A program made the position numbers and the translations under genes. The notes below the pieces were generated by a model that saw nothing but the letters and a program-made list of their open reading frames with translations, was not told the origin of the DNA and searched no databases. A stretch of 64,000 nucleotides of DNA from IMG/VR virus record IMGVR_UViG_3300042541_001760, positions 1-64,000 of that record; one strand, given 5' to 3'. This document shows positions 1-41,321 of this stretch, piece by piece (within the stretch, counting starts at the first letter, position 1; each line of letters starts with the position of its first letter).

Positions 1-3000
1 TACTAGGAAATGGTGTTTCAGTTGGTGTGGCAGTGTTTGTTGGGGTTTTAGTATTGGTTGGTGTTTGAGTAGTAGTAGTAGTATTAGTAGGCGTTTGAGT
101 AGTAGTAGGAGTTACCGTTGGTGTTGGGGTTTGGGTTGTAGTAGTGGTAGGTGTTTCTGTTCTAGTAGGGGTGTTAGTTGGCGTTTCATTTTGTGTTGGG
201 GTATTAGTTGGTGTTTCAGTTTGTGTTGGTGTTGGTGTCTGAGTGTTAGTCCGAGTATTAGTCGGAGTTGGAGTGTTTGTGGTTGTTTCGGTTGGGGTAA
301 TGGTATTAGTCGGTGTATTTGTAGGTGTTTGCGTAGGTGTTTGTGTTGGGGTTTTAGTCGGTGATTTTGTCACCGGTGGTGTCATGGTTGGTGTAGGTGT
401 CGGTGTATTTGATGGAGTTACGTCAGGTGTTTGTGTTGGGGTTTGTGTCTGAGTACTTGTTGGTGTATTTGTTGGGGTATTTGTTGGGGTTGGAGATTCC
501 GGCGTTGTTGGGGTTGGTGTTGGGGTTGTAGTTTTTGTTGGTGTATTTGTTGGTGTATTTGTTGGTGTAACAGTATTTGTTGTCGTGTTTGTTGGCGTGT
601 TTGTTGGTGTGTTTGTTGGTGTATCGGTATTTGTTGGTGTATTTGTTGTTGTGTTTGTTGGTGTTCTTGTTGGGTTCGGACTCGATAAAGGGGTTTTTGT
701 GTTTGTTGGTGTAACAGTATTTGTTGGTGTTTGAGTCGCGGTTTGAGTCGCGGTGGTGGTTATTGTTGGCGTATTTGTTGGTGTAACAGTATTTGTTGGT
801 GTTTGAGTCTCGGTTTGAGTTGGGGTAATGGTTATTGTTGGCGTAACAGTATTGGTAGGGGTTTTAGTTGGGGTAACGGTAGGTGTTGGTGTTGTCGTGG
901 GTGTTGGGCATACCACATCACCATTTAGAACTAAATTACACTCATCACAATCGTCAAATAACCTATACGAACTAAATGGTAATGAGGTATTAGGTATACC
1001 TCTTGAAATTACGGTACAAGCACTAAATCCATCTTCGGTTGTTAGTAAAAACGTATTTTGGGTACTACTAATTAATATACCTAATAGATCCGGCTGATTA
1101 GTTAAGTCAATACGGTAAGTACCACAACAAGAACTTAAAACAATTGGTAAAGTAGTTGTGCTCGGAGTTGGGGTATGTGTAGGTGTTGGGCTAGGTGTTG
1201 GACAAGCTCCTCCGGGTAAGTAATTAGCAATACAAGTATCACAATCACCAGTGAAATTAAAAACATAATCAGCAGTTTCAAAAACAAGATTAACATAACC
1301 GTATGTTAATTTCGTACAACCCGAATACCCATCAGTTTCAATATAATAAATTTCATTTAGAGTTAATCCAGAAGCGATTGCTGGATTTGTAAATTTAATA
1401 TTGGTATTACCACAACAAGAAGAGAATACTAATTCTACTTTTGTTGGGGTAGGTGTTGGGGTTGATGTTTGAGTTGGGGTTCTAGATGGATTATTAGTTC
1501 TAGTAGGTGTAGGGGTTGACCTATTACTCGGCGTTGATGTTTTAGTTGCGGTTATTGTAGGGGTAACCGTAGGTGTTGGGGTTGGGGTAGGCGTTAACCC
1601 TAAACAATCATTACAACTATTGTAAGGCCCAATAAATGAAGTTATTTGATTAGGACAACAAGAACAAGACCCACTCATAGTAACAACAAAACAATCCGTC
1701 TCAACATAAGAAGAATTATTTAATTCGGTAATACTATTTTGGGTGCAATTATTATATGAAGTAAAATAACCCCCAACTATTAAATTTAGACCGTCGTTTG
1801 TTAATGATACTTTATAAGCCGAACCACCACCAAAACCATTTCCTGTGACAAATGAAGTTACAACAGATCCGGTGGAATCCAATTTAACAATACCATTATA
1901 AGTTACCCCTTGATATGTGGTGAAATTACCAACGATTATATAATTACCATCAGAATCAACCTCAATATCTCTTATTGTTCCTCCACTAAATCCAACTCCC
2001 GTATTGAAACTATTGTCTACTGTTCCGTTTGAATTTAACTTTATTAATCCATTATGATTAATTCCGTTATATTGAGTAAAGTCACCACCAACTAAAATGG
2101 TATCATCCCCTAATACTTTAACCGCATAGACCGAATTATTAAACCCTACCCCACAATTAAATGCCGGTTCGATATTACCACCATTTGTTAACGCCACTAT
2201 CTTATTAGATGATATTCCATCAAACTCAGTAAAAGACCCGACCGCAATTATTGTTCCATCAGATAATAAATCTATGTCATAAACATATTCATCATTAATA
2301 TTTGGTAAAAAACCTCCATTACCAAAACCAGGATCAACACTACCATTATAATCTAATCTTATTAGTTTATGATAATATATTCCTCCGGGGTTACTAAATG
2401 TACCCCCAACCAATATTTGATTATTAGGTTGTATTTTTATTTTAGATATTGCACCTCCATTGGGGAAGTTTATTGTAGTGAATCCTGGGTCTATTAATCC
2501 TGTCGAATCTACTCTTTGTATTAGGTTACCGGCAATGTTTACTTGTTGAGCTAAACCAACCAATACGTATGTGTCTGGTTGTTGAACAACTTCATTAACA
2601 TATACATAACTTGGACCTCCGTAATTAAATGTTGTATCTAAAGTACCATTAGGATTTAATCTTATGACCTCATCTGACAAACTAATACCACTATATTGTG
2701 AGAAATTACCCGCCAATAATACCTTATCATCAATTTGTACATCAACACCAATTACAAAATTATTAAATCCTGAACCAATTCTAAAATCTCCCGTATTAAT
2801 TGTTCCGGGTAAAATATTAATATTGACATCATATATTGAATTTAAAACCATTGTACTTGTGGTACATCCACTATAAACTCTTCCATCGGTACACGCACTT
2901 AATTCATAACAATATCTTTGAATGAATGTTGGGGTAACCGTTGGTGTTTGTGTTGGGGTTGCCGTATTTGTTGAGGTTACCGTAGGTGTTGCCGTATTTG

Positions 3001-4498
3001 TTGCGGTTACCGTAGGTGTTACCGTCGGTGTTGAGGTTGTTGTTGGTGTTGGAGTAGGACATATAATCCCTATTGTGTCCAATCTACATGTATCACAATC
3101 TAAATATTCGGATATTGAAACGAAATCGTATAATATGTCAGGGGCATGATTAACAACCGTAGTACATCCAGTATAGCCATCTGTAATTAAATAATATGTT
3201 ATTAATGGGTTTAAGGAATAAATTAATTCTGACTCTTCAGTTAAACCAATATAAATTTCATCACAACAATCTTTAAAGGCTTTTTGTGGTCTAGTTGGTG
3301 TTGGGCTAGGTGTTTGAGTTGGTGTTGGTGTAGGACAATTATTATTACCGGTACTATCTGTTAAACAATTAATACAATTAGTATAAGGATTACTAATAGA
3401 AATAAATTCGTAAAAGTTATCAGGTCTTACGGGAACAATAGTCACACAACCAACAAATTGAGATGTCTCAATATAATATGTTTTTGTTGGATCAAGTGTT
3501 GATATAAACTGAGTTTCCTCCATCAAGGAGAATAAATCAGTTGTACAACAAGAACTAAATCCTAATTGTGGTGACGGGCTTGTTGGGGTAACTGTTGGTG
3601 TTAGTGTTGGGGTAACTGTTGGTGTTAGTGTTGGTGTGACTGTTTTGGTTGCAGTTCGACTTGGCGTGACTGTTTTAGTTGTAGTTGGAGTTGGTGTTGG
3701 TGTTGAAGTCGCGCTTGTTGGAGAGGGGGTTTGGGTTGCGGTTTTTGTGGGTATTGGTAATGGAACCCACGGACCGGTGTTTGGTTGAGGTTCTACGTAC
3801 CCAAATGTTTTAGTTGGGGTTGGGGTTGGTGTCTTAGTTGGGGTTGTGGCAGGAGTTGCGGTGTTAGTCGGAGTTTGGGTTGGTGTAGGTGTTGGGCTAG
3901 GTGTTGGGCAAGCTCCTCCGGGTAAGTAAGTAGTAATACAAGTATTACAATCACCAATTACATTAAAAACATTATCAGCGGTTTCTAAAACAAGATTAGC
4001 ATAACCGTATGTTAGTTTTGTACAAGCTGAATACCCATCAGTTTCAATATAATAAATTTCATTTAGAGTTAACCCAGAGGCAATTGCCGGATCTATGAAT
4101 TTAATATTGGTATTACCACAACAAGAAGAGAATACTAATTCTACTTTTGTTGGGGTGGGAGTATGGGTTGACGTTTGAGTTGGGGTTGACGTTTGAGTTG
4201 GGGTAGGCGGGGTAGGCGGGGTAGGCGGGGTAGGCGGGTCAATTACGACCTCACCTTTATCGTTCAAGATTAGATAAGTTATACAATCACCATCTAAAAA
4301 CCCATCAGGGGTATTAATACCAATTACTCCATTAACGTAAGTTTCTGTAGACCCATCCGAATAAGTAATAGTTCCAGATGTGTTATCAATATTCGGAGTT
4401 ACAATTACGGTAACACAATTTGCCCCATTACAATCACATATAGTAATAGTATATGGACCACAACTATATATTAGACCATTAAATATTAATTCACACAT
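1..4498 (-). CDS. Large mucin-like structural/adhesin protein (partial, runs off window start): Cys-rich modules, Thr/Pro linkers and a delta-60-type beta-propeller
   Basis: Not in the ORF track. ATG at 4498 ([16 protein letters not shown]...); same frame confirmed at several checkpoints down to position 2 (...[11 protein letters not shown]), about 1500 aa with no stop seen. Repeated SSCC...C..C...CPTP modules; propeller repeats such as [15 protein letters not shown]...[12 protein letters not shown] and [12 protein letters not shown]...[12 protein letters not shown] at about 1750-2760. Confidence 0.85.
1181..1480. repeat. 300-bp internal duplication, copy 1 (Cys-rich module)
   Basis: Aligns ungapped with 3887-4186 at roughly 90% identity; encodes [19 protein letters not shown]...[13 protein letters not shown]. 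Confidence 0.9.
3887..4186. repeat. 300-bp internal duplication, copy 2
   Basis: Partner of 1181-1480. Confidence 0.9.
4200..4238 (+). repeat. 9-bp tandem repeat (GGGGTAGGC)x4 encoding PTPPTPPTP
   Basis: Read directly from the sequence. Confidence 0.85.
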
Positions 4499-6144: not shown

Positions 6145-9100
6145 TCACGGAGTACAAGAAGTGCAACCACTAAATGTGGAACCTGTCCAAGAAATTGAAA
6201 TTCTTTCTATAGGACTTTCTTGTACACCTCTATATTCCCAACATCCTGTGATACCTGATAATTTAACTACTTGATTAATAGTTAATCCTGACAAATTAGA
6301 GTTAGTGTATATACATTCTCTACTATCTCCACTAAAGAATCTATTAAAAGAATTTTGAATTGTTGTAGAACTAAAGTCTGTTACCGTAGGGTCAATATTC
6401 CAATCAAAGTTAATTAGACCAGCCCCATTCCTATCCAACACATTCAACGAAGTATATCCGGTTAATGATGTGTATGTTGAGAATGGATTAAGTGTCTGTA
6501 ATGTCACGAACGTCCAATTGTTACCCAACTCAGAGTTTATGTTTGGCCAAACCCCACCATTAAAATTATAATTAGAGAAGTAAGATGCTGACCTTGTTTG
6601 ACCTTCAATCAACGCTAACGACTCTAAAATAAATTGGAATGACTGAGCCTCCACAGTCAAGAAACCTTCAACAAGGTTACCATTTGGATTTACAAATAAT
6701 AGGTTATTTACTTTTTTACCTAAAGTGTTTGTAAAATAATTCCAAGATGTTAGGTAATTGTTATAATCCTTTTGAACTCCCGTATTGTTAATATAGAAAT
6801 TTGATGGTAAAGATGATGTATTACCATTTGTTAATGTAGACCCTGTTCGTGTATATATCGGAGAAGATTCATTAATTACACATATAGCAATAAAACTATC
6901 CGTTTCAGGGGTGAAATTACCTGCGGTTGAGAATTGTGTTAATTCCGCATGATTAAATGGAACACCTTGAGATCCGTATATATCTGAAGTTATAGTAGGG
7001 TATGATGCGAAATCCCAACCATTATTAATTATTTGTTTAACTGACGTATCGTTTGATATACCACTATATAGTAAAGAGTTATTATCAACGTAGTTACCAC
7101 CAATTGTCGCTCCCGATAAAGTTCCTGTTATAGGATAAATCGGCCAAGAAACCCATCTTTCATCCCACAATACCATCTCATAAAGAGACCCTGTATATCC
7201 ACTTGTTAATGTTAATCCACTATACCAAGTTCTAACACTTAAAGCAACATCTTGTAATAACGAATCACTATATGACCCAGAACCGTCATAGAAAACATAA
7301 ATATTTCTATCCAAATTAGGATTACAGTTACATAGTACGTCAGATAATATATTTGACCTTGGGCTTGGTGTGTTTGTTGGAGTTACCGTTTTAGTTGGGG
7401 TTATTGATGATGTAGGGGTGACAGTTTTGGTTACACTAGGGGTTAGCGTATTTGTTCTTGTTATGGTAGGAGTTACCGTATTAGTTGGAGTTTCAGTTTG
7501 TGTTGGGGTTGTTGTTTGTGTTGGAGTTTTAGTTGCAAATGGAGTTCTATTGGGAGTTTTTGTTGGAGTTGTTGTTTTCGTAGGGGTAACGGTGCTAGTT
7601 GGCGTAGTCGTATTTGTTGGAGTTTCAGTATTTGTCGGAGTTGTTGTTTTTGTGGGAGTAACTGTGATAGTTGGGGTGGGGGTATTTGTTGGGGTTGTGG
7701 TGTTTGAAGGTGGTATAGTAATAGTTGGAGTAGGTGTTTTAGTTGATGTTGGGGTGATAGTATTTGTCGGTGTTGGTGTATTTGTTGGTGTATTTGTTGG
7801 TGTTTCAGTATTTGTTGGTGTCGTTGTATTTGTTGGAGTTTGAGTTGCGGATGGAGTTTTTGTTTGGGTTATTGTGTTTGTAGGTGTTTGTGTTTGTGTG
7901 GCGGTAACTGTGTTGGACGGCGTTTGAGTATTTGTTGGTGTGGATGTCTGAGTTGGAGTTTTAGTATTTGTTGGTGTTGTTGTTTGAGTTGGAGTCTCTG
8001 TTCTGGTTGGTGTTTGTGTAATCGTATTCGTAGGTGTTGAGGTATTAGTTGAGGTAGGTGTTTTTGTATTTGTTGGAGTTACAGTATTGGTAGGTGTAAC
8101 TGTGCTAGTTGTAGTATTTGTATTAGTTATAGTGTTTGTGGGTGTTTGTGTAGATGTTGGCGTTCGAGTTGCGAATGGAGTTTTAGCGGGGGTTTTAGTG
8201 TTAGTTGGGGTCTGAGTAATTGTTTTAGTCGGAGTATTTGTTGGTGTTGATGTAATTGTATTAGTTGGGGTGGGGGTAGGTGTTTTTGTGTTAGTTGGAG
8301 TTATAGTATTAGTAGGTGTAACTGTATTAGTTGGGGTTTTAGTAGGTGTAACCGTATTAGTTGGTGTAGATGTTTTTGTGGGTGTTTTTGTATTGGTTGG
8401 GGTTAGGGTATTTGTAGTAGTAACAGTAGAAGTTATCGTATTAGTAGGGGTTGCAGTATTTGTTGGTGTTTGAGTATTAGTAGGGGTTTTAGTTGCAAAT
8501 GGAGTTTTAGCCGGAGTTTTAGTGCTAGTTATTGTTTGTGTGGGTGTTTGTGTAATAGTGTTAGTTGGTGTTTGGGTTCTAGTGTTTGTAGGTGTCTGAG
8601 TTGGTGTTTTAGTATTTGTTTGGGTTTGAGTATTAGTAGGAGTTTGAGTATTAGTAGGGGTTTGAGTATTAGTAGGGGTTTTAGTATTAGTAGGAGTTTT
8701 AGTATTAGTAGGAGTTTGAGTATTTGTTGGTGTGGATGTTATTTGAGCAGGTGTTATAGTTGGAGTAACAGTAGTTGTTTTAGTTGGAGTTATAGTATTA
8801 GTAGGAGTTATAGTATTAGTAGGAGTTTGAGTATTTGTTGGTGTGGATGTTTGAGTTTGAGTATTAGTTTGAGTTTGAGTATTAGTAGGGGTTTTAGTTG
8901 CAAATGGAGTTTTAGCCGGAGTTTTAGTGTTTGTAGGTGTTTGTGTTTGAGTTTGTGTGGTAGTGTTAGTTGGGGTTTGAGTATTTGTATTTGTAGGTGT
9001 CTGAGTTGGAGTTTTAGTATTTGTTGGTGTAGGTGTTTGAGTTGTCGTTTCTGTGTTGGTAGGTGTTTGAGTAATTGTATTTGTAGGTGTTGGCGTTTCT

Positions 9101-12228: not shown

Positions 12229-12691
12229 GGATTTATACGGAAAAGAGATTAAGATTCCTGTGGAGATTAAAAATCACCTTAAGAATTCTTCTATGTCAAT
12301 AGGTGAAACATCCGAAAACGAAGAAGGGGCGAAAAGAAATAAGGAACTTCAAGACCAAGAATCAATGACCTACCAACAACTAAAAAGGGTTAAGAATTGG
12401 TTTGACGATTATAATGGAAATAAAGAAGACGCTCCATATATTTTAAATGGTGGAGATTATATGAAAAAATGGGTGGATGATACGTTAAATTATTTAAGAA
12501 CGGATATTTATAATACAAAGAAAAATAGATCTGAAGTGTTACCGAATCAATTTAATTCTGACCACACAAAGGACGATTTAAAAACAATGAATAGACCAAG
12601 TAAATCACATAATAACCCCATTGACCAATATAATATTAAAATAACAGAAAACCTGAAAAGGATAAACGAAATAATGAAAAAAATAATCTAA
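12221..12691 (+). CDS. Hypothetical protein
   Basis: 156-aa ORF overlapping the previous gene; C-terminal ITENLKRINEIMKKII helix. Confidence 0.75.
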   Translation: MNKDLYGKEIKIPVEIKNHLKNSSMSIGETSENEEGAKRNKELQDQESMTYQQLKRVKNWFDDYNGNKEDAPYILNGGDYMKKWVDDTLNYLRTDIYNTKKNRSEVLPNQFNSDHTKDDLKTMNRPSKSHNNPIDQYNIKITENLKRINEIMKKII

Positions 12692-12692
12692 C

Positions 12693-28562: not shown

Positions 28563-28563
28563 T

Positions 28564-31232: not shown

Positions 31233-31244
31233 TATATTTGGCGT

Positions 31245-32243
31245 ATGAAACCAAAAATATTTATAGGTCCTATGAGTAAAAATATCGTAGATGCGATAAT
31301 TAAATACTCAAACGAAAATGATATTGAAATTGGGTTAATACCGTCTAGAAGACAAGTTGAATTTGACGGTGGTTATGTTAACAATTGGACAACAAAAGAT
31401 TTTTGCGAATACGTAAGAAACCGATCTAATAAAATATTATTAGTAAGAGATCATGCTGGGCCATCACAAGGATATAGTGAGGATGACGGTATGGATTCTT
31501 TTATTGAAGATTGTAAATATTTCGATATCATACATGTTGATGTTTGGAAAAAACATAAAGAGTATCGAGAAGGGTTATTATCTACAGTAGATTTTATTCT
31601 AAAAGGATTCAGTTTAAACTCAAACTTGTTATTTGAAGTGGGTACTGAAGAATCAATCAGACCAACTAACGAAATCGAATTAAATAACCTTTTAGGAGAC
31701 TTGAGAAAGTTATTACCGTTACAGGTATACGGCCAAATTAAATACGCAGTCATTCAATCTGGAACGGCCTTAAAAGGCAACACAAACATTGGTAGTTTCA
31801 ATCAATACAGATTAATCGAAATGGTTAAAGTTGTCAAAAATCACGGGATGATATCTAAAGAACACAATGGTGATTATTTGACAAATGAATTAGTTAAATC
31901 AAAATTTGAAAACGGTTTGAGCGGTATTAATATTGCGCCAGAATTTGGTCAGATAGAAACAAAAATTATTTTAGGGATTATTAAAACTAACCATCCAGAA
32001 TTGATAGATGAATTTTATAAAATTTGCTATGATTCAAAAAGATGGGTAAAATGGGTTGACGCAGATTTTATTCCGGAAAACAACAAAGAAGAAATTATAA
32101 ACATAAGCGGACATTATGTTTTTTCTGAACCTAAGTTTATCGAACTTAAAAATAAATTAAATTATAATAATTTAGATTCTGATGTACAACAATCAATCTA
32201 TAACAGAATCGATGAATTAATTAAAACTATAAATGAAATCTAG
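31245..32243 (+). CDS. GatZ/KbaZ-like (tagatose-6-phosphate 4-epimerase family) protein
   Basis: SRRQVEFDGGYV...T.KDF...ILLVRDHAGP, EVGTE, KEHNGDY and NIAPEFG. Confidence 0.65.
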   Translation: MKPKIFIGPMSKNIVDAIIKYSNENDIEIGLIPSRRQVEFDGGYVNNWTTKDFCEYVRNRSNKILLVRDHAGPSQGYSEDDGMDSFIEDCKYFDIIHVDVWKKHKEYREGLLSTVDFILKGFSLNSNLLFEVGTEESIRPTNEIELNNLLGDLRKLLPLQVYGQIKYAVIQSGTALKGNTNIGSFNQYRLIEMVKVVKNHGMISKEHNGDYLTNELVKSKFENGLSGINIAPEFGQIETKIILGIIKTNHPELIDEFYKICYDSKRWVKWVDADFIPENNKEEIINISGHYVFSEPKFIELKNKLNYNNLDSDVQQSIYNRIDELIKTINEI

Positions 32244-33024
32244 AACTGCGTTTATAATATTTGCTCATTCAACAATACACACAATTGAAGATGTTGATGA
32301 TATGATATCTAATATTTCTTATTTCCACGATAATTGTGATTTTATGATTAATCATCCTACTTTAGACCATCCTAAAATTAGAATGCGTCATATGCCTGGC
32401 AACTTAAATCACTCTAATTTAATTTTTGGTGGTTTGATTGATTTGATTAAAAATATTACCGAAGACGAAATAAACTCATTTGACCATTTTTGTTTGGTTT
32501 CAGCTAACCAATATTTTATAAACGGAATTAACTTTGAAAAAGGGATTAACTATGTTCAATTTTTTAACACTGAAGATTGGTATTCCACATATAATGGAAA
32601 AGATTCAGATATATCGATAGTAGGGTTTCCATTGCAACAACCATATGGTCGTTGGGATGGTAAAAACTTATATTTAGAATACAACGTAGACTTGCCAATG
32701 GGCGCTAATTGGGAATGTATGACTGTAACAAAAGAAGTAATATTATTGGCTAAACAACATTTAGATAAATGCTTAGAGTACTACCCAAATGATGATATGA
32801 TGTCTATATTTTTACCTTATATGGTTTTATTAAGTAAACAGACATGGGAATTCCCTTCTCATTTTGGTACTTATGACCCATCAAACAAACCTAATTATAA
32901 TCGGATAATAACAATAAATCAAATTGTTGAAAAATACAATCAAGGTTACTTTTCAATTAAAAGAGTTAATTATCTTAAAAGTTGTGAATTAAAACAATTC
33001 ATTAGACAAAATTACATGAAATGA
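32233..33024 (+). CDS. Hypothetical protein, possibly GT14/core-2-like
   Basis: TAFIIFAH and HFCLVSANQYF; weak resemblance only. Confidence 0.45.
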   Translation: MKSRTAFIIFAHSTIHTIEDVDDMISNISYFHDNCDFMINHPTLDHPKIRMRHMPGNLNHSNLIFGGLIDLIKNITEDEINSFDHFCLVSANQYFINGINFEKGINYVQFFNTEDWYSTYNGKDSDISIVGFPLQQPYGRWDGKNLYLEYNVDLPMGANWECMTVTKEVILLAKQHLDKCLEYYPNDDMMSIFLPYMVLLSKQTWEFPSHFGTYDPSNKPNYNRIITINQIVEKYNQGYFSIKRVNYLKSCELKQFIRQNYMK

Positions 33025-33983
33025 AAACAATAACAATAAATTATTTATCACATAATAGATTAGATTATTCTAATTTAATGTTTTATTTTTTATCTAAAAT
33101 AAAATTAGAAAATAAAATAAAATTAAAACTTAACGTATTAGCAACTCATGAAAATAATTGGGATAATAAATGTAAAACATTAGGTATTGATTATGAGATA
33201 CATATTATAAATACATATCATAATTATTTAGATAAAATAAGAATTGCTATTTCGAGCAACACTGAATATTCAGTTAAATTAGATGAAGACTGTTTTACTA
33301 ATAACCACGTTTGGGATTATTTAATTGAAAATGTTGTTGAATTACAAAATAATGATGTTCTTACATTATCACCAGTAATGTCAAACAATATACCATCATG
33401 CGATTATTTTATTGAAGATTTCATAAGTGATGACTTAGTTAAAAATAATGTATATAATAATTTTTTAAATAGACCGATGCCAAATGGGTTATGGAGTGTT
33501 GATTATACCCCATTAAATAAATTCACAATTGATGCAACAGAATGGGACGCTAATAAATTTTATGAAGGGTTAAACTTTTTAAACACAAACACAAAAGGAA
33601 TACACCCACTTAGAATTTCATATGAGGCTCAAATAGAAATTAATAATTATATTTTAAACAATATTGATAAATTTATTTCTAATAATGAATTTAAATTATT
33701 TGAAATAAATTCACCGTATTTTACTAATAGTTTATTTTTTATTAAAACTTCTGAATGGGTTAATATATTATCACAACCAACAATTGATGCGTATGATGAA
33801 ATAGCATTAAATAAATACAAAAGGGATAACAATAAAAAGTTTTTATTTGTTAAAAATGGATTTGGTATCCACCCTATGTTTAATACCGTATTCGGTAATA
33901 ACAACCCTTGGGGTATTGGTATTGTGAATGGTGAACAATTAGAGCAAAATTTTTATACTGACTTAAAAAATAAAATAATATGA
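33021..33983 (+). CDS. Putative GT-A glycosyltransferase
   Basis: YSVKLDEDCF (DxD-like) after a YLDKI helix. Confidence 0.5.
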   Translation: MKTITINYLSHNRLDYSNLMFYFLSKIKLENKIKLKLNVLATHENNWDNKCKTLGIDYEIHIINTYHNYLDKIRIAISSNTEYSVKLDEDCFTNNHVWDYLIENVVELQNNDVLTLSPVMSNNIPSCDYFIEDFISDDLVKNNVYNNFLNRPMPNGLWSVDYTPLNKFTIDATEWDANKFYEGLNFLNTNTKGIHPLRISYEAQIEINNYILNNIDKFISNNEFKLFEINSPYFTNSLFFIKTSEWVNILSQPTIDAYDEIALNKYKRDNNKKFLFVKNGFGIHPMFNTVFGNNNPWGIGIVNGEQLEQNFYTDLKNKII

Positions 33984-34618
33984 TACATTGTGTAGGAGAT
34001 AGTCACTCATCGGTGTTTAGTGGCAATGAAGAAATGCAACCCATTTGGCCGGAACGATCAAATGATATAACACCATTTTTTAAAAGTTATCGAATAGGAC
34101 CAGCAACTGCTTACCAATTAGATAATAAAAAAGAAATAATCAACCAAATAATACCGTTAGTAACGGAAGGTGATAAATTATTATTTTGTTTTGGGGAGGT
34201 AGATATAAGAGCACATTTATTAAATCAATCAATTGGTCAAAACCGACCGATTGAAGACGTTGTTATTGAATGCTTAACCCGTTATGTGGAAGTCATTAAA
34301 CATTACAAAAATTTAGGAATTTCAGTCATTGTTTGGGGACCTATTGCGTCTTGGAACGATAGTAAGCCGTATTTAGGTGGTCCTAGTTTTGGTACGAACA
34401 TTGAACGTAATGAAATTACAAGGCTTTTTAACAACCATTTATTATCACAGGTAAAAGTTTACAATATACCATTCGTCACCATATTTCATGATATGTTAAA
34501 TGGTGACGGTACAACTAATGTTGAGTTACTTGATAATTGGCAAGATTGTCATATTCATTTAAATCAAAAGGCCATGCCATTAATAATTAATAGATTTAAA
34601 AATGAAGGGTTAATATGA
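33980..34618 (+). CDS. SGNH/GDSL-like hydrolase or acyltransferase
   Basis: GDSHS, FGEVDIR and DCHIHLN. Confidence 0.65.
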   Translation: MIHCVGDSHSSVFSGNEEMQPIWPERSNDITPFFKSYRIGPATAYQLDNKKEIINQIIPLVTEGDKLLFCFGEVDIRAHLLNQSIGQNRPIEDVVIECLTRYVEVIKHYKNLGISVIVWGPIASWNDSKPYLGGPSFGTNIERNEITRLFNNHLLSQVKVYNIPFVTIFHDMLNGDGTTNVELLDNWQDCHIHLNQKAMPLIINRFKNEGLI

Positions 34619-35055
34619 TATTAATATCCCATAGAGGTAACACTAATGGTAGGGCGGAATCATTAGAAAATAACCCATCATATGTTGATTTAGCTATTTA
34701 TAATGGGTATGATGTTGAAGTGGATGTTTGGTATCTTGAGGGGGTTTTATATTTAGGACATGATAAACCACAATATGTTACCGATATAAAATGGTTTAGT
34801 GATAGGTTGACTAAACTATGGATTCATTGTAAAAATATCGATTCAGTAAAGTACTTTAAAGAGAGTGGATATGAATTCAATTATTTTTGGCATCAGAGAG
34901 ATGACATAACTCTCACCTCTAAAAACTTTTTATGGACGTTTCCCGGTAAAAAACTAACGACCCTGTCAATTGCGGTATTACCTGAAACTGTGGACTCATG
35001 GGATATGACAGAATGTTTAGGTGTATGTTCGGATTACATTAAAAATTATATATAA
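34615..35055 (+). CDS. Short GDPD-like phosphodiesterase
   Basis: ISHRGN, VEVDVW, LGHD, WIHCKN and GVCSD. Confidence 0.7.
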   Translation: MILISHRGNTNGRAESLENNPSYVDLAIYNGYDVEVDVWYLEGVLYLGHDKPQYVTDIKWFSDRLTKLWIHCKNIDSVKYFKESGYEFNYFWHQRDDITLTSKNFLWTFPGKKLTTLSIAVLPETVDSWDMTECLGVCSDYIKNYI

Positions 35056-35119
35056 GTATGAAAAAACCACATCTAATAAATAAAATAATACGACAATAAG
35101 ATAACAAAATAATTATTAA

Positions 35120-35173
35120 ATGACATATGAAGAATTAACTAAAGTAATAAAAATAGTAAATAAAAATAAGTGA
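35120..35173 (+). other. 17-codon mini-ORF overlapping the GTG start of fcl
   Basis: MTYEELTKVIKIVNKNK with a GTGA overlap; a second 13-codon ORF lies at 35058-35099. Confidence 0.4.
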
Positions 35174-36072
35174 GAAAATTATTAGTAACGGGGAGTAATG
35201 GGTTAGTTGGGTCATCAATTATTTCTGACATAAAAATAGGTAGACAATACGATTTACGAAATGTTGGAGAATCGGATAAGTTGTTTGAACTACACAATCC
35301 CACCCACGTTATTCATTGTGCGGGTAAAGTAGGTGGTGTTGGTGGAAATATGAACTATAAAGGTGAATACTTTTATGATAACATAATGATTAATACAAAT
35401 GTTATTGAGTCAGCAAGAAAAACAAATGTTAAAAATTTAGTTTGTTTTTTGTCCACATGTGTATTCCCTGATAACGTAAATTACCCCCTAACTGAGGATA
35501 TGATACATTTAGGAGAGCCCCACTTTTCAAACTATCCTTATGCTTACGCTAAAAGAATGGCGGACATACAAATAAGAGCGTATAGGGAACAATATGGTCT
35601 TAACTATACATCAGTTATACCAACTAACATTTACGGACCTAATGATAACTTTTCGTTAGAACACGGTCATGTTATGCCAATGTTAATACATAAGTTATAT
35701 TTAGCACAAAAAAACAATACCGATTTTACGGTGTGGGGATCAGGAAAACCTCTAAGGGAATTTATATTTTCTAAAGATGTTGCTAAACTATCAGAATGGG
35801 CGGTTGAGAATTATAACGAATCTGAACCTATAATATTTAGTCCTTCGCAGGAAATATCTATAATTGATTTAGTTGATTTAATAGTTAAAGAATTTAACTT
35901 TAAAGGTAAGGTTATCTTTGACAATACAAAACCTGACGGTCAATTTAGAAAGCCGTCAGACAATAGTAAACTAAAATCTTATTTACCAGATTTTAAATTT
36001 ACACCAATAGAGGAAGGGATTAAAGAAACTGTTAATTGGTTTTTTAAAAATTATGAAAATGCAAGAAAATAA
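35170..36072 (+). CDS. fcl: GDP-L-fucose synthase
   Basis: GSNGLVG, HCAGKVGG, STCVFP, YAYAKR, PTNIYGPNDNF and WGSGKPLREF. Confidence 0.9.
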   Translation: MRKLLVTGSNGLVGSSIISDIKIGRQYDLRNVGESDKLFELHNPTHVIHCAGKVGGVGGNMNYKGEYFYDNIMINTNVIESARKTNVKNLVCFLSTCVFPDNVNYPLTEDMIHLGEPHFSNYPYAYAKRMADIQIRAYREQYGLNYTSVIPTNIYGPNDNFSLEHGHVMPMLIHKLYLAQKNNTDFTVWGSGKPLREFIFSKDVAKLSEWAVENYNESEPIIFSPSQEISIIDLVDLIVKEFNFKGKVIFDNTKPDGQFRKPSDNSKLKSYLPDFKFTPIEEGIKETVNWFFKNYENARK

Positions 36073-37045
36073 AATAGCGTTAATCACGGGAATAAATGGT
36101 CAAGACGGATCATACTTATCTGAATTTTTATTAGAAAAAGGTTATGAAGTTCATGGAACATTAAAAAGAAATTCCGTATCTGAAAATCAAACATCAAGAT
36201 TAAATAATGTTTATGATAAACTTATATTACATTATGCGGATTTAACTGATTTAGCGTCTCTAATTAGAGTGATACAAGAAGTTAAGCCTGATGAAATTTA
36301 TAATTTAGCGGCGCAGTCTCACGTTAGAATTTCCTTTGACCAGCCAATTTATACCACAAATGTAACAGGTCTTGGAACTCTTAATTTATTGGAAGCGGTT
36401 AAACTAATAAAACCCAACACAAAAATATATCAAGCATCCTCATCTGAAATGTTTGGTAATAATATTGACGAGGATGGATACCAAAGAGAAACAACCCCAA
36501 TGAGTCCGGTATCTCCATACGGATGTGCCAAAGTTTTCAGTTATAACATATCAAGAAACTATAGAAATTCTTATGGTATGTTTGTATCAAACGGAATTTT
36601 ATTTAATCACGAATCACCAAGACGAGGAACAAACTTTGTAACAAATAAAGTTTGTAAGGAAGCGGTTAAAATTAAATTAGGATTATCTGATGAATTGAAA
36701 TTGGGTAATCTTGATGCTACAAGAGATTGGGGTCACGCCAAAGATTATGTTAAAGCGATGTGGGAGATATTACAATTGGATGAACCAGATGACTTCGTAT
36801 GTTCAACAGGGGTATCACACTCTGTTAAAGATTTGTGTGAATATGTGTTCGGTAAATTAGAATTAAATTGGGTTGATTATGTAACTCAAGATGAAAAATT
36901 TTTAAGACCCGAAGAACTACGAGACTTAAAGGGTGACTCATCAAAATTAATTAATAAAACAGGATGGTCGCACGAGTACTCCTTTGAGACCATGTTAGAT
37001 GAAATGATTGACTATTGGCTTAATTATTATAAGATTACAGTATGA
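36059..37045 (+). CDS. gmd: GDP-mannose 4,6-dehydratase
   Basis: ITGINGQDGSYL, NLAAQSHV, QASSSE, SPYGCAK, FNHESPRRG and LGNLDATRDWGHAKDYV. Confidence 0.93.
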   Translation: MQENKIALITGINGQDGSYLSEFLLEKGYEVHGTLKRNSVSENQTSRLNNVYDKLILHYADLTDLASLIRVIQEVKPDEIYNLAAQSHVRISFDQPIYTTNVTGLGTLNLLEAVKLIKPNTKIYQASSSEMFGNNIDEDGYQRETTPMSPVSPYGCAKVFSYNISRNYRNSYGMFVSNGILFNHESPRRGTNFVTNKVCKEAVKIKLGLSDELKLGNLDATRDWGHAKDYVKAMWEILQLDEPDDFVCSTGVSHSVKDLCEYVFGKLELNWVDYVTQDEKFLRPEELRDLKGDSSKLINKTGWSHEYSFETMLDEMIDYWLNYYKITV

Positions 37046-37785
37046 CAAGAAAAAAAGTATCACCCACTCAGAAATCTCAAACGTCAGCTAGACCTGAGTC
37101 AAACGAGAGACGACTTTCAAAAAAAGAATTAATTAATTCTTTAATAACAAAAAAAATAAGAAATAAATTCCTAACCGAAAGTCAAAAAACCTATTATGAC
37201 CTACTGACCAATAATCAGATAGTTCTATGTTCAGGTCCGGCAGGTGTTGGTAAGAGTTACATATCAATGAAGGCGGCGGTTGATTTACTAATGGATCCCG
37301 AAAACTCATATGAGAAATTGGTAATTGTTCGTCCTGCAGTTGAGGCTGAAGAAAAATTGGGTTCTCTCCCCGGCAATGTTGAAGAGAAATTGGATCCATA
37401 TATTTTTCCATCTTATTATCTATTAAATAAAATTATTGGTAAAGAGGCTCGTGAGAAGTTAAAGGAGGCTGAAATTATTGAGGTATTCGCTCTTGCTTAT
37501 ATGAGAGGTATGAATATTGATAATACCATTTTGATTTTTGAGGAGGCCCAAAATGCCACCCCAAACCAAATGAAATTGTTATTAACAAGAATTGGTTATA
37601 ACTCTAAATTTTTCATATCAGGAGATTTGGAACAAACGGACAGATATAAAGACAAAAAACAATCCGGTCTTTGGGACGCTTTACAACGATTTAAAGGTGT
37701 TGATGATATTGGAGTATTTGAATTTGGTGACGAGGATGTTGTAAGAAATCCATTGATTACTAAACTCTTAAAAAGATACATATAA
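37042..37785 (+). CDS. phoH: PhoH-family ATPase
   Basis: GPAGVGKS, RPAVEAEEKLGSLPG, YMRG, EEAQN and GDLEQTD. Confidence 0.9.
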   Translation: MTRKKVSPTQKSQTSARPESNERRLSKKELINSLITKKIRNKFLTESQKTYYDLLTNNQIVLCSGPAGVGKSYISMKAAVDLLMDPENSYEKLVIVRPAVEAEEKLGSLPGNVEEKLDPYIFPSYYLLNKIIGKEAREKLKEAEIIEVFALAYMRGMNIDNTILIFEEAQNATPNQMKLLLTRIGYNSKFFISGDLEQTDRYKDKKQSGLWDALQRFKGVDDIGVFEFGDEDVVRNPLITKLLKRYI

Positions 37786-38444
37786 TGAGAGTCGGTATTG
37801 AGTTAAATGGTGTTTTGAGGGACACCATAAGCAAGATAACTCAGGTATATGAAAAACATATGGTTGAGGAGATGGCGGAAGAAATCATTAAGACCTATGA
37901 AACTACCGTAGATTCTGAGGATTATGTTGAGATGACTTTTGATGAGGTTGATTTTAAATACGAAATCAAAAGTCCGGTAACATCATTAAATTTAATGGAA
38001 CACTTTTCCTTTAAAGATAAGGACGAGTTATATAATTTTATGTATGAGGAATTCCCAATGCAAATATTTGGTCATGCCCCATCAACTGAATTGACATCAT
38101 TCTACGATTTAAACGACATTTACTACAGATTAAGAGACGATCATGACCTAATGATAGTATCTGATGAAATAGGTAGATCAAAACCGGCATCACTATTCTT
38201 TTTATCAAAGTTCGGATGTTTAATTGAAAAAGTTAAATTCTATAGTAATTCTACAATTAATTCAATGTGGGATGAAATTGATATTTTACTTACTTCCAAT
38301 CCTGACTTACTATTAAGTTATCCAGATAATAAGATTATCATAAAATACGAAACTGAATATAATAAACAAATTAATTCGGAATATTCTATAACCAAAATAA
38401 AGGAACTTGAGGATGTTTTGAATACCATTTTAAACCCTGAATAA
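37785..38444 (+). CDS. HAD/5'-nucleotidase-like protein with degenerate motif I
   Basis: RVGIELNGVLRD in place of DxDGVL. Confidence 0.55.
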   Translation: MRVGIELNGVLRDTISKITQVYEKHMVEEMAEEIIKTYETTVDSEDYVEMTFDEVDFKYEIKSPVTSLNLMEHFSFKDKDELYNFMYEEFPMQIFGHAPSTELTSFYDLNDIYYRLRDDHDLMIVSDEIGRSKPASLFFLSKFGCLIEKVKFYSNSTINSMWDEIDILLTSNPDLLLSYPDNKIIIKYETEYNKQINSEYSITKIKELEDVLNTILNPE

Positions 38445-38704
38445 TGCTAAAAGTACTTAACGAAAATTATTACCTTGATTTGGATGCTATTGAACAATAT
38501 ATCAATATCACCTCATTAACGGGAGGACCTGAAACACACATTAATGTTGTTAAATATGAGGTCGTAAAAACTATGCTTGAGGTTATTATGACCGAAGATG
38601 AAGAAGTTGATGAGGCTTTGGGTCAAAAATCAACGGGTTTAACAATCCCTTTTAAACTGGCATTTAACACGCTTTTAAATAAAAAACTAATAAATAAATA
38701 TTAA
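38444..38704 (+). CDS. Hypothetical protein
   Basis: 86-aa coupled ORF. Confidence 0.7.
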   Translation: MLKVLNENYYLDLDAIEQYINITSLTGGPETHINVVKYEVVKTMLEVIMTEDEEVDEALGQKSTGLTIPFKLAFNTLLNKKLINKY

Positions 38705-38705
38705 T

Positions 38706-39770
38706 ATGGACCAAGAAACATTAAAAAAATTAGAGAAATCTATCGAGAATCTTAAAGACAAGAGTGCTAGAATTTATTTCATTGTACAAGATACAAAAGG
38801 TAATGCTAAGGCATCTTTAAGTTACATTTACAGAATGGCTTTATCTTTAAAGCGTAACGGATTTAATCCAATTATGTTACAAGAAAAACCTGATTACACC
38901 GGAGTAGAATCTTGGTTGGGCGAAGAATTCATGACTGAGTTACCTCACAAAGCAATTGAGGGTCAGAATCTTGAAATTTCACCTGAAGATTTTATTGTTG
39001 TACCGGAACTTTATGGTTTCATTATGCCACAATTGGAGAAACTACCTTGTGCTAAAATTGTTTTATGTCAATCATATGATTATATGTTGGAGACATTACA
39101 ACCAGGTCAAACTTGGGCTCAATTAGGTTTCTTTAAGTGTATTACAACATCGGAATTACAAAAAGATTATATTAGTAACATCATGAAAGGTGTTACCTTT
39201 GATATAATTGAACCTGTTATTTCAGATAAATTTAGAAAACAAGAATTACCACCTAAACCAATCATTGCGATTCATACAAGAGACCATAGAGATACTTTAA
39301 CTCTGATTAAATCTTTCTACCTTAAATTCCCACAATACAGATGGGTTACATTCAGAGACCTTAGAGGATTGTCCGAACAAGAATTCGCAAACGCATTACA
39401 AGATTGTTTCTTGTCTGTTTGGATTGACCCTAATGGTGGATTTGGGACATTCCCATTGGAATCAATGAAGTCAGGAGTTCCTGTTATTGGTAAAATACCA
39501 AATCTATTCCCGCAATGGATGAATGAAGATAATGGTATTTGGATTAGAGAACACAATCAAATTGTTGATTTTGTTTCTGACTTTTTACAGAATTGGTTGG
39601 AGGATAATATTAACGAAGAATTATTCTCTGAGATTGAGAAAACATCATCTAACTATTCAGATTTTAGTAAGTTTGAATCTAGTGTTGTTGATACATTTGG
39701 TAAATATATGACCACTAGATTTGAGTCATTCACGGAACAATTAAATAAACTAGAAACAACGGAATCGTAA
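38706..39770 (+). CDS. GT-B fold glycosyltransferase-like protein
   Basis: FIVVPELYG and EFANALQDC...GFGTFPLESMKSGVPVIG (GT4-type C-terminal motif). Confidence 0.7.
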   Translation: MDQETLKKLEKSIENLKDKSARIYFIVQDTKGNAKASLSYIYRMALSLKRNGFNPIMLQEKPDYTGVESWLGEEFMTELPHKAIEGQNLEISPEDFIVVPELYGFIMPQLEKLPCAKIVLCQSYDYMLETLQPGQTWAQLGFFKCITTSELQKDYISNIMKGVTFDIIEPVISDKFRKQELPPKPIIAIHTRDHRDTLTLIKSFYLKFPQYRWVTFRDLRGLSEQEFANALQDCFLSVWIDPNGGFGTFPLESMKSGVPVIGKIPNLFPQWMNEDNGIWIREHNQIVDFVSDFLQNWLEDNINEELFSEIEKTSSNYSDFSKFESSVVDTFGKYMTTRFESFTEQLNKLETTES

Positions 39771-39771
39771 T

Positions 39772-40578
39772 ATGGAAAATTATATAAATCTATCGGTTAT
39801 TTTGCCGATCAAGTCAGCGGCGGTTAAAGATTTTGACGAATTGTTTGAAAAAGCAATTAACTCACTTAAGAATCAAAAATCATTATTTAACGAATTAATT
39901 ATTGTTCACACAGATGAAACTAAATTAGTTGATACTATTAACAGATTTGATTTCGGCGATTTAAATGTTAAGAAACTTTTATGGGATAAAGAACCAAGTT
40001 ACTCTAATCAGATTAATTTTGGTGTTGAGAACTCTTCATCTGAATGGGTTTCATTTTTTGAATTTGATGATGAATATTCAAGTATTTGGTTTAAAAATGT
40101 AAAATTATATTCGGAAGCGTATAAAGATGTTCAGGCTTTCTTACCAATTGTTGTTGATATTGACGATAAAGGGTTGTTCGCAGGATTCACAAATGAAGCA
40201 TCATTCGCGGCTAATTTCTCTAACGAAATTGGTTATCTGAATAACGAAACACTACAAAGTTATCAGAACTTCCAAAGTGCTGGAATGGTTATCAAGAAAA
40301 GTGTATTTGAGGAATATGGTAAATTTAAACCATCAATTAAATTAACTTTCGTATACGAATTCTTACTTAGAATGACTTATAATAATGTTAAGATTATGAC
40401 AATCCCTAGAATTGGTTATAAGCATTTAAATTTACGTGAAGGGTCTATTTTTTGGAACTACAAGAATGGATCTGAGGTTATGTCACCTGATGAGGTAAAG
40501 TTTTGGATTGAGTCTGCTAAGAAAGAATATTTTTTCACTATTGATAGAAACATAAAATATGAACCACAAACAGTTTAA
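39772..40578 (+). CDS. GT2-like glycosyltransferase
   Basis: LSVILPI, NFGVE, SFFEFDDEY and YEFLLRM. Confidence 0.7.
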   Translation: MENYINLSVILPIKSAAVKDFDELFEKAINSLKNQKSLFNELIIVHTDETKLVDTINRFDFGDLNVKKLLWDKEPSYSNQINFGVENSSSEWVSFFEFDDEYSSIWFKNVKLYSEAYKDVQAFLPIVVDIDDKGLFAGFTNEASFAANFSNEIGYLNNETLQSYQNFQSAGMVIKKSVFEEYGKFKPSIKLTFVYEFLLRMTYNNVKIMTIPRIGYKHLNLREGSIFWNYKNGSEVMSPDEVKFWIESAKKEYFFTIDRNIKYEPQTV

Positions 40579-41321
40579 TGACATTAAGTGGTTCCACGGA
40601 TATTGAGGTTAAAAGGAAAGGTAGAAAACCTAAAGCGGATAATTATTTTGATGTAAGGGAAGAGGTTGCGGTAAGATTATTCTTATCCGCAACAACTTCA
40701 GAAGAAAAAAACAAAATATATAATCAAAGTTTAAGGAAACCTCTCGACAAAATGATATCGTCAATAATAAGACGATATAAGTTATATCGGAAAGATATGG
40801 ATTTTATTGAGATCCACGCTGACACGCACTCGTTCTTAATGACCAAAATAGATAAGTTTAAACCATCAAAAGAAAAGAAAGCGTATTCGTATTTTGGTAC
40901 CATATGTAAAAATTATCTTATGGGTCAAATAATAAAAGACCAAAAAGAAACGAACAGAAAAATTTCATACGAGGATATATCATACGATTTGGAAAATAAC
41001 CTTAGACCCGACTTAATATATTATATTGATAATGATTCAATAGACACGGACGATATAATATCCTCTTACATTAGTGAATTACAAAAAATAATACATGAAG
41101 AAGGTTTAAACGAAAATGAGCGTAAATTAGGTGAATCTTTATGTGAAATTTTTGTTAATTACAAATCAATCTTCATAAGTACCGACAATAATAAGTTTAA
41201 TAAGAATATTATATTGTTATCATTAAGAGAAATGACCAACTTATCAACTAAAGAAATAAGGTCATGCATGAAAAAATACAAAAGAGTATATTTTGATTTA
41301 ATTCAAAATATGGTTAAGTAA
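40578..41321 (+). CDS. Divergent sigma factor, T4 gp55-like (candidate late sigma)
   Basis: KIDKFKPSKEKKAYSYFGTICKNYL resembles sigma region 2 of gp55-like proteins. Confidence 0.65.
   Translation: MTLSGSTDIEVKRKGRKPKADNYFDVREEVAVRLFLSATTSEEKNKIYNQSLRKPLDKMISSIIRRYKLYRKDMDFIEIHADTHSFLMTKIDKFKPSKEKKAYSYFGTICKNYLMGQIIKDQKETNRKISYEDISYDLENNLRPDLIYYIDNDSIDTDDIISSYISELQKIIHEEGLNENERKLGESLCEIFVNYKSIFISTDNNKFNKNIILLSLREMTNLSTKEIRSCMKKYKRVYFDLIQNMVK

Follow-up and report, generated by a model that had tools for sequence, protein, structure and literature searches.

The stretch of DNA described here, in the following called the window, comprises 64,000 nucleotides and corresponds to positions 1-64000 of the 261,052-bp viral contig IMGVR_UViG_3300042541_001760 (100% identity). 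It carries three genes, A, B and C, whose products contain very long threonine/proline-rich (TP-rich) arrays, and to the right of them a block of genes for glycosyltransferases (GTs) and sugar metabolism. The gene content suggests, as the best-supported reading, that in phages of this kind the TP-rich fibres are glycosylated in the cytoplasm by enzymes of the phage itself, with priming by a GT60-type enzyme and a soluble gene island that supplies sugars and further enzymes, and we consider this reading about evenly balanced between right and wrong. What makes self-glycosylation probable is that a close relative has a GT60-type gene directly behind such a fibre gene. More tentatively, the same genes may indicate that a whole freshwater jumbo-phage lineage, represented by at least 408 contig stretches, runs a true mucin-type O-glycosylation in the bacterial cytoplasm, in which GT60 primes virion-fibre arrays of up to 1,500 residues and the islands extend the glycans in a clade-specific manner.

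The TP-rich segments add up to 1,546 residues over A, B and C, with 35-49% threonine and 16-32% proline. Together with the late promoter motif described below, this bears out the first-pass annotation, which had listed three late-type proteins with more than 1000 Thr/Pro residues. None of the remaining open reading frames (ORFs) in the window has more than 33 TP-rich residues and the capsid protein lacks a S/T-rich tail, i.e. within the window the arrays are confined to these three genes. The coding repeats are degenerate (periods of 6, 12 and 18 nt with 62-100% matches in the TRF arrays), and therefore the arrays are real and old and an assembly artefact is ruled out. Gene A is cut inside its terminal TP array at window position 1; the assembly probably broke in this repeat, and the adjoining region, which is the GT60 site in relatives, is missing.

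Cys-rich modules between the TP repeats had also been predicted, and A, B and the end of C indeed contain at least seven copies, which align as one unit of about 80 aa with six Cys and the consensus F-S-S-C-C ... YYIET-DG-Y-x-x-C ... D-C-x-x-C ... C-P-T-P. There was no Pfam match to this module and a word-indexed protein search gave no homologue among proteins of similar length, and judged by its sequence we take it to be a new type. The lectin, vWA and propeller domains named earlier turned out to be of unequal standing. The propeller of A is clear (DUF5122, E 4e-40, five stretches in Pfam) and recovered only itself when used as query. For the N-terminus of C, an AlphaFold model based on 33 homologues (pLDDT 69, pTM 0.75) found its best PDB fold matches among ConA-like jelly rolls (E ~1e-3, low TM), which points weakly to a lectin-like domain; neurotoxin entries among these matches were dismissed as generic ConA-like jelly rolls of no functional meaning. 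The C-terminus of C is plausibly vWA-like, according to three weak, concordant hints: a DGSGS motif, VWA clusters in the Atlas (0.83) and Foldseek top matches to vWF-A1 and integrin beta-I (E ~0.02). PDB sequence searches with both ends of C gave no significant match. The C-terminal domain is very rare, with 22 relatives among 1.84 billion cluster representatives, and several of these relatives are large and contain SprB repeats, one of them with a sub-threshold match to a sorting domain of the type IX secretion system (T9SS). Therefore, the domain resembles surface adhesins of Bacteroidota, which argues for a host from this phylum.

The N-terminal 630 aa of C represent a core gene of the lineage, and the part that follows is variable with TP lengths between 0 and 873 aa. 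This combination of a conserved N-terminus and a variable C-terminus is usual for a receptor-binding fibre and supports self-glycosylation of fibres. Homologues of gene A were found in the clade of the window only (L005, L002/L003), and A and B are both limited to one clade. From all this we infer that A, B and C are late virion fibre or adhesin proteins, in which anchor domains or Cys modules are connected with binding domains by very long Thr-Pro spacers.

The assignment to the late class comes from a motif, RTATTTATWnnnAAAA, which is located ~20 nt 5' of the start codons of A, B, C, 11377, 41334, 45445 and several head genes (numbers refer to the genes in Table 1) and which probably serves as late promoter in this T4-like lineage. 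Among relatives it precedes 90% of the homologues of C, 94% of those of 11377, 91% of those of 41334 and 100% of those of 45445, as well as half of the other TP-rich ORFs. For nearly all island gene families the value is 0%; isolated matches, one or a few per gene, precede homologues of 14129, 34615, 35170, 37042 and 40578. The TP genes belong to the late class, as they have this motif in common with genes for head and baseplate in the window and also in relatives. T4 itself uses the late promoter TATAAATA, which was also tried as late signal of this phage and rejected, as it is not enriched (19 found vs. 16.7 expected) and TATTTAT is found instead. At the start of the glycosylation block, a hairpin terminator followed by a host-type promoter (TTGAxx-17-TATAxT) is kept upstream of 14129 in more than 40 distinct relatives. 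Thus, the fibre genes are late genes and the island is a separate unit that is probably expressed earlier. An earlier island fits a supply of sugar nucleotides that is set up first, and it fits a host-directed role equally well.

The enzyme that could connect both parts is found in many relatives. Following C on the same strand, these encode a 414-aa protein of the GT60 family (PF11397, E 1.7e-64), which is 65-91% identical among distant relatives and was detected in at least 408 viral contig stretches; a PDB sequence search with this protein gave no significant match. GT60 enzymes are polypeptide alpha-GlcNAc-transferases; in T. cruzi and Dictyostelium they initiate the mucin-type O-glycosylation of Thr-rich mucins, and Skp1 is another substrate, which is modified in the cytoplasm (PMC8724618; PMC6939170). 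In the phages, GT60 opens a cassette of 1-13 small soluble ORFs including GT10, GT25-like and methyltransferase genes, which is closed by a conserved HtrL_YibB+GT2 protein of ~556 aa and followed by the late motif and more fibre-like genes. The variable enzymes are flanked by GT60 and HtrL, and the orientation agrees with that of the neighbouring TP genes. A count of the neighbours in 70 distinct GT60 loci revealed a TP-rich ORF directly upstream of GT60 in 35 of 67 loci (52%, 21 of them with at least 100 residues, compared with a background of 13%), a TP-rich ORF after HtrL in 38 of 63 loci, and no TP-rich ORF among the 239 of the cassettes.

The arrangement is particularly tight in L418, a member of the window's clade with 80% identity in C. 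Here, a 3,289-aa protein with 1,045 TP residues joins the vWA-like domain, the Cys modules and the propeller of C, B and A, and GT60, at 11243-12490 of L418, starts 73 nt after it with no terminator between. The L418 cassette holds homologues of the window genes 24338 and 34615, and altogether seven genes of the window island (18342, 22787, 24338, 25717, 26840, 28552 and 34615) have homologues inside GT60 cassettes of relatives, so that island and cassette draw on one enzyme pool. Dense Pro/Thr/Ser acceptor arrays, a feature of mucin-type O-glycosylation, are present in the window with the 1,546 TP-rich residues, and a putative initiating polypeptide transferase, which is not in the window, lies directly after the giant TP gene in L418 and beside TP genes in most relatives. 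Among cultured jumbo phages, XacN1, Xoo-sp13 and Stenotrophomonas CM1/RAS14 encode GT60 homologues as well (44-47% identity), and these isolates could act as experimental models. In Xanthomonas phage XacN1 (AP018399.1, 203-224 kb; L419/L420), GT60 adjoins a carbamoyltransferase and GT9, and the gene for a 3,313-aa baseplate-adjacent protein, in which short PT linkers occur, is ~9 kb away.

The architecture of the locus was compared in two sets of 80 loci, one with C and the other with PhoH as anchor. The order is fixed: C on the minus strand, five small genes, terminator and promoter, 14129, exonuclease, dUTPase, 16706, island, PhoH, right flank and the late genes of the baseplate side. The left flank (14129..18340) is present in 63-70 of 80 loci, with 14129 itself in 70, and the right flank (37042..41321), in which PhoH is followed by four conserved genes including GT2 (39772) and then one more conserved gene, in 80 of 80 PhoH-anchored relatives. 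The first-pass annotation had described one coupled block of 27 kb; instead, there are three evolutionary units, two conserved flanks around a hypervariable island, and exonuclease, dUTPase, PhoH and conserved genes of unknown function are part of the block as well. The variable island between the 16706 homologue and PhoH ranges from 0.5 to more than 10 kb in more than 80 relatives, and with 18.7 kb the window has the largest one seen. Some relatives lack it, and the dUTPase or the 16706 homologue abuts PhoH. The 632 island ORFs fall into 309 clusters at 40% identity, and a Pfam census of 150 representatives yielded epimerases/dehydratases, GT2, GT8, GT10, GT11, TylF/FkbM and other methyltransferases, DegT aminotransferases, acetyltransferases and hexapeptide transferases. 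With such a hypervariable set of GT and nucleoside diphosphate (NDP)-sugar enzymes at a fixed site, the island shares a feature of O-antigen and capsule loci.

Domain support for the window genes came from hidden Markov models (HMMs) of Pfam, PHROGs and NCBIfam, and additional GT candidates from Atlas neighbours. Between 14129 and 41321, seven ORFs with eight GT domains are HMM-supported and two more are probable from the Atlas, and the resulting nine correspond to the low end of the 9-13 glycosyltransferases suggested before. The NDP-sugar enzymes and methyltransferases were recovered as expected, with gmd, an fcl-like gene, an epimerase, nucleotidyltransferases and one firm (FkbM) and two weak methyltransferases. 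The G+C content is mostly 25-33% over 18-37 kb compared with 33-39% in the fibre and head regions. In a 335-nt stretch (21672-22007), a GT11-type gene is left with its last 42 aa (71% to relatives, E 1e-16), and a second piece is a stop-interrupted N-terminus, which was read as methyltransferase-like with a tblastn match to FkbM of only E 1.8. Such gene wreckage points to recombination, decay and rapid turnover in the island.

In agreement with the first-pass annotation, no membrane-spanning enzyme was detected: none of the ORFs in 11377-41321 reaches a mean of 1.6 in a 19-residue Kyte-Doolittle window, and A, B and C do not begin with signal-like sequences by the same check, which is a simple hydropathy method and not TMHMM or SignalP. 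In 80 relatives, a single hydrophobic segment is present in 8 of 484 island ORFs and multi-spanning proteins in 0 of 484. GtrABC/Oac, phosphoglycosyl transferases, Wzx/Wzy and ABC exporters were found neither in the window nor among the 25 most frequent of the 112 Pfam families in the 150 representatives. Hence, the island is a diversity cassette of the O-antigen type that lacks the membrane-bound part of these pathways, and the soluble nature of its enzymes speaks for glycosylation of the phage's own fibres.

Based on these genes, the following course of events can be proposed. The soluble island would be switched on from the host-type promoter, ahead of the late genes. Its enzymes would make GDP-fucose (gmd, fcl) and other NDP-sugars, using two nucleotidyltransferases, epimerases and phosphatases, and the island would also supply the elongating and capping enzymes, i.e. 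GT25, GT2-like, alpha-1,2- and alpha-1,3-fucosyltransferase types (GT11 and GT10, respectively) and O-methyltransferases. Late in infection, a GT60-type polypeptide GlcNAc-transferase, whose gene is directly behind the TP genes in relatives and would be expected just past the contig end in this phage, could act in the cytoplasm and prime the TP arrays at Thr (or modified Pro). Extension of the primer by the other transferases would lead to short fucosylated and methylated O-glycans, and the glycosylated fibres might act as stiff, protease-resistant bottle-brush spacers.

Several observations weigh against this proposal. No GT60 or other protein-priming transferase is encoded within the 64-kb window, and the source contig is not among the best 80 GT60 matches in two listings. 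In L402, the closest relative, the contig ends 2.5 kb past the A homologue with no GT60 up to there, and the GT60 cassette of the window phage may lie in unassembled sequence beyond gene A. The adjacency to C is not universal, as GT60 is located ~67 kb from C in one clade, and the proximity of GT60 and TP genes could partly reflect a common hypervariable zone. GT10, GT11 and GT25 are classic lipopolysaccharide (LPS)/lipooligosaccharide families, and the promoter of the island is of the host type instead of the late motif.

The same direction is indicated by the lack of co-variation between TP length and the size of the GT island, which the first-pass annotation had proposed as a check. Cassette size and upstream TP length are unrelated in 44 GT60 loci (rho 0.04, p 0.78). 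In nine contigs with both anchors, the distance from C to PhoH showed no clean relation to the TP residues near C (window, 25.7 kb and 1,546 residues; L005, 19.7 kb and 1,840; L003, 17.2 kb and 1,096; L054 and L034, both 17.6 kb and 42; L070, 17.8 kb and 129; L036, 19.4 kb and 46; L042, 12.0 kb and 0; L043, 5.0 kb and 357), and all high TP values come from one clade. Relatives with an island of 10-12 kb have ~45 TP residues near C, and relatives without a variable island keep 159+198. Thus, TP arrays and glycan genes are linked by position and gene family and not by dose. For the glycan coat on the phage's own fibres, as originally suggested, this leaves a mixed picture: late TP genes, soluble enzymes and GT60 beside TP genes in relatives speak for it, and the missing co-variation, the host-type promoter and the missing priming transferase in the window against it.

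The best surviving alternative is a remodelling of the host envelope, which we regard as rather unlikely. The island, and perhaps the cassette, would feed NDP-sugars and peripheral transferases into lipid-linked pathways of the host (O-antigen, capsule or the general O-glycan of Bacteroidota) and the TP arrays would be bare spacers; a superinfection block or reduced sticking of the progeny to debris are possible purposes. Similar GT10/GT11/GT25/GT2/epimerase sets in large T4-like cyanophages have been interpreted in this way, and the promoter of the island, its O-antigen-like hypervariability and the missing dose relation of the TP length are all in line with it. The absence of membrane spans is compatible with a lipid-linked host glycan as target, because the cytoplasmic elongating transferases of such pathways are soluble, too. 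However, no phosphoglycosyl transferase, flippase, polymerase, ligase or Gtr-type protein was seen in the window or among the most frequent families in the islands of relatives, the window shows no sign of a temperate lifestyle, and GT60 is a polypeptide-directed enzyme placed in the late fibre cluster.

Even less probable, in our view, is that the TP arrays are unglycosylated entropic linkers, comparable to a fishing line, as in many bacterial surface proteins, and that the glycan genes with another or varying target are near them through a common plastic accessory zone. The wide range of TP lengths (0 to more than 1,500 aa) in relatives that without exception retain the core GTs, the missing quantitative co-variation, the restriction of A and B to one clade and the rapid turnover seen in the gene wreckage of the island would be in favour of such a coincidence, but GT60 and HtrL are strongly conserved, frame variable enzymes and share the orientation of the flanking TP genes, and the frequency of TP-rich ORFs upstream of GT60 is far above the background. 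A hypermodification of phage DNA, in which some transferases, above all the 14129 GT-B, would glycosylate modified bases as protection against restriction, is very improbable: 14129 is kept in 70 of 80 loci beside nucleotide-metabolism genes, has relatives in E. coli phages and 735-kb huge phages, and phage DNA glycans are known to be diverse, but the 64-kb window gave no domain of a hydroxymethylase, a TET/JBP-type oxygenase or a base kinase, the 19-kb toolkit for fucosyl, methyl and amino sugars far exceeds known DNA glycans, and GT60 would be left unexplained. For 14129 alone, located beside exonuclease and dUTPase, a DNA-directed role is conceivable. This protein has relatives with 27-35% identity in ~130 GenBank phages, mostly Phapecoctavirus-like phages of E. 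coli (often with two copies) and in addition the 735-kb huge phages, and a PDB sequence search with it gave no significant match.

Self-glycosylation of the fibres would have parallels in several known systems. The capsid of chlorovirus PBCV-1 and the fibrils of mimivirus receive their glycans from virus-encoded cytoplasmic pathways with their own gmd/fucose-synthase-type enzymes, soluble GTs and methyltransferases. The enzyme types and the glycan clusters that differ between clades are shared with the phages described here; these are, however, eukaryotic viruses with N-linked acceptors or fibril-protein acceptors of another kind. The Atlas neighbours of ORF 32233 include Nucleocytoviricota. 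Serine-rich-repeat adhesins of Gram-positive bacteria are O-GlcNAc-primed by GtfA/GtfB and extended by soluble GTs in the cytoplasm. Long repeats of hydroxy amino acids and cytoplasmic soluble GTs would be common to both systems, but the adhesins are cellular proteins with Ser-rich instead of Thr-Pro repeats, GT4 priming and accessory Sec export. In prophage serotype conversion (GtrABC/Oac), membrane-bound GtrA, GtrB and a type-specific transferase are involved, which were not found here. The proposed likeness to gel-forming mucins of animals holds for the composition only and is convergent, as the vWD, CysD and cystine-knot domains were not found in A, B and C, for which Pfam gives DUF5122 only.

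Within phages, the closest parallel are mycobacteriophages of the Che8/Corndog type, in which soluble phage GTs are believed to glycosylate virion proteins of the same phage while these are still in the cytoplasm of the unlysed cell (Freeman et al., 2023, as cited in PMC12619734). In these phages, the acceptors are short C-terminal extensions of capsid or tail-tube subunits, 2-4 GTs are involved and the attachment of glycans is proven, whereas here the candidate acceptors are fibres with hundreds of TP residues and the putative toolkit comprises tens of genes. The T4-like cyanophages P-SSM2, S-SCSM1 and S-SCSM2R (>200 kb) encode ~13 GTs of families 1, 2, 10, 11 and 25 and NDP-sugar epimerases, which have been read as modification of the host surface or of DNA (PMC12801897). 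Large T4-like phages with GT10/11/25/2 sets are thus found in both cases; a link to TP-rich fibres or GT60 is not reported in that paper, and the window phage has no close relative in DNA or fibre protein among GenBank phages. Moraphages, aquatic jumbo phages of 200-307 kb with predicted Bacteroidota hosts and four core GT orthogroups, whose role is left open in the article (PMC12619734), resemble the present lineage by description in freshwater origin, genome size, predicted hosts and core GTs, and the article mentions neither fucose nor threonine. In protists, PF11397 enzymes are likewise combined with Thr/Pro-rich acceptors, and the glycosylation of Skp1 is cytoplasmic and includes fucose, but the enzymes for protist mucins act in the Golgi and the phage GT60, present in relatives and not in the window, is a sequence-based assignment.

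Already known, therefore, are virus-encoded soluble self-glycosylation in some mycobacteriophages, chloroviruses and mimiviruses and large GT clusters in big aquatic T4-like phages. Fibres with hundreds to more than 1,500 TP residues, a lineage-wide GT60-HtrL cassette among them and a fixed hypervariable site for soluble glycan enzymes appear to be new, and a literature search found no paper on TP-repeat fibres together with such a cassette and site. If the fibres are glycosylated, lake phage particles would carry dense, clade-specific glycan brushes, which would give a new view of adsorption, host range, resistance to proteases and grazers and particle stickiness in an abundant phage lineage, and the LPS-like clusters of big aquatic T4-like phages would gain a concrete and testable target. 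Mucin-type priming by GT60 would extend from protists to phages, and if this is true, no earlier mucin-like glycoprotein system would be known from prokaryotic viruses, and the initiating enzyme family would be that of protist mucins. Bacteria could then be equipped with a small set of soluble enzymes for the production of O-glycosylated repeat proteins. Should the hypothesis be wrong, the architecture would still help to chart a lineage about which little is known, with its late motif, the hypervariable glycan site at a fixed position and the GT60-HtrL cassette.

The source of the window is a lytic-type T4-like jumbo phage, as a gp23-type capsid protein, a gp20 portal, a T4-type large terminase and a prohead protease are all present. 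The capsid protein is at most 42% identical to those of cultured phages and 43% to that of an uncultured 484-kb phage (the nearest GenBank phages are this 484-kb phage, Microcystis phage Mel-JY01 and Flavobacterium phage immuto, 42-43% at most), which indicates a distant T4-like lineage. It is long (612 aa), with the strongest gp23 match spanning residues 356-597 only, so its N-terminal half would be divergent or contain an insertion. Megablast of the structural half and tblastn of the C N-terminus and of the 16706 GT against GenBank phages gave no match, PHROGs gave almost no matches on tail-side, head-side and other structural genes, and Rfam and tRNA scans of the window were empty. In IMG/VR the lineage is very common, with the fibre gene in more than 150 contigs and the capsid and PhoH genes in ~600 each. 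The longest contigs of relatives have 290-322 kb, i.e. the source contig is 30-60 kb shorter.

Taken together with the affinities of the C-terminal domain of C and of gmd, from which the host phylum is deduced, the window is probably the fibre end of a freshwater T4-like jumbo phage of ~260-320 kb with a Bacteroidota host. The nearest genomic genes of gmd are from Saprospiraceae (78%), Acidobacteriota (75%) and metagenome-assembled genomes (MAGs) of Aureispira and Cryomorphaceae. One 4-kb "Saprospira" MAG contig with gmd may be mis-binned phage DNA, as the same sample gave a near-identical phage contig. A host outside the Bacteroidota had been considered owing to the sigma-70-like island promoter (14078-14106), and this was dropped, since its -10 element approximates the TAnnTTTG of Bacteroidota too and the adhesin and gmd affinities point to this phylum; the promoter itself does not settle the host phylum.

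Table 1. Features of the window with position, strand and supporting evidence.
Feature	Position	Strand	Evidence
Gene A, fibre/adhesin, 1,499 aa seen, C-terminus cut by contig end	<1..4498	minus	650 TP-rich residues, 5-6 Cys modules, DUF5122 propeller (aa ~560-905)
TATTTAT before A	4503-4509 and 4524-4530	minus	motif scan
Gene B, 427 aa	4835..6118	minus	203 TP-rich residues, degenerate Cys modules
TATTTAT before B	6138-6144	minus	26 nt upstream
Gene C, fibre, 1,725 aa, ATG start	6145..11322	minus	693-aa TP array
C C-terminal domain, 400 aa, vWA-like, related to SprB/T9SS surface-protein domains	6145-7350	minus	weak hints
C TP array, 693 aa	~7351-9429	minus	composition
C N-terminal 630 aa, conserved, lectin-like by fold only	9430-11322	minus	predicted structure
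TATTTAT before C	11337-11343	minus	21 nt from ATG
TATTTAT copies, plus strand	11357-11363, 41323-41329, 45424-45430	plus	motif scan
Five small conserved genes, one with weak WYL match, late-motif unit	11377..14003	plus	ends at hairpin terminator
Intrinsic terminator	14027-14053	plus	strong hairpin
Host-type promoter TTGAAT-17-TATACT, opens glycosylation block	14078-14106	plus	sequence pattern
GT-B glycosyltransferase	14129-15355	plus	phrog_7162, E 1e-42
PolB-exo-like exonuclease	15352-16086	plus	left flank
dUTPase	16086-16709	plus	left flank
Bifunctional GT2_5+GT4 glycosyltransferase	16706-18340	plus	HMM
Hypervariable soluble glycan island, 18.7 kb	18342..37045	plus	G+C mostly 25-33%
GT25	18342	plus	HMM
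GT11 (two genes)	18959, 19812	plus	HMM
Epimerase	20656	plus	HMM
Gene wreckage	21672-22007	plus	homology remnants
Methyltransferase, weak	22007	plus	HMM
GT10	22787	plus	HMM
Probable GT-A (GT2/GT7C-like)	23653	plus	Atlas 0.98
HAD + nucleotidyltransferase	24338	plus	HMM
FkbM methyltransferase, firm	25717	plus	HMM
Methyltransferase, weak	26840	plus	HMM
HAD	28203	plus	HMM
Cupin	28552	plus	HMM
Nucleotidyltransferase fused to kinase-like part	29658	plus	HMM
Probable GT14/Branch-like	32233	plus	Atlas 0.94
fcl-like epimerase	35170	plus	HMM
gmd	36053-37045	plus	E 2e-118
About nine further ORFs without assigned function	within 18342..37045	plus	ORF list
PhoH	37042	plus	right flank
Three conserved genes of unknown function	between PhoH (37042) and 39772	plus	right flank
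GT2	39772-40578	plus	HMM, right flank
Conserved gene of unknown function	40578-41321	plus	right flank
Late-motif tail/baseplate-side genes 41334, 41703, 43802, 45445; right border of glycosylation block	41334..46935	plus	position and motif, no HMM match
Other TATTTAT copies	49168-49174, 52962-52968, 54098-54104, 55387-55393, 57278-57284	minus	motif scan
gp23-type capsid protein	49603-51441	minus	PF07068, 1.5e-72
Prohead protease	53352-54083	minus	PF03420, 2e-23
T4-type portal (gp20)	55394-57256	minus	PF07230, 3e-74
T4-type large terminase (TerL)	57320-59092	minus	PF03237, 3e-15

Among the late genes to the right of the block, the 634-aa protein encoded at 41703-43607, for which there was no HMM match, is the sole ORF scanned between 4835 and 49135 with hydrophobic segments (aa 411-430 and 493-517), and it may be a tape-measure or membrane-penetration component.

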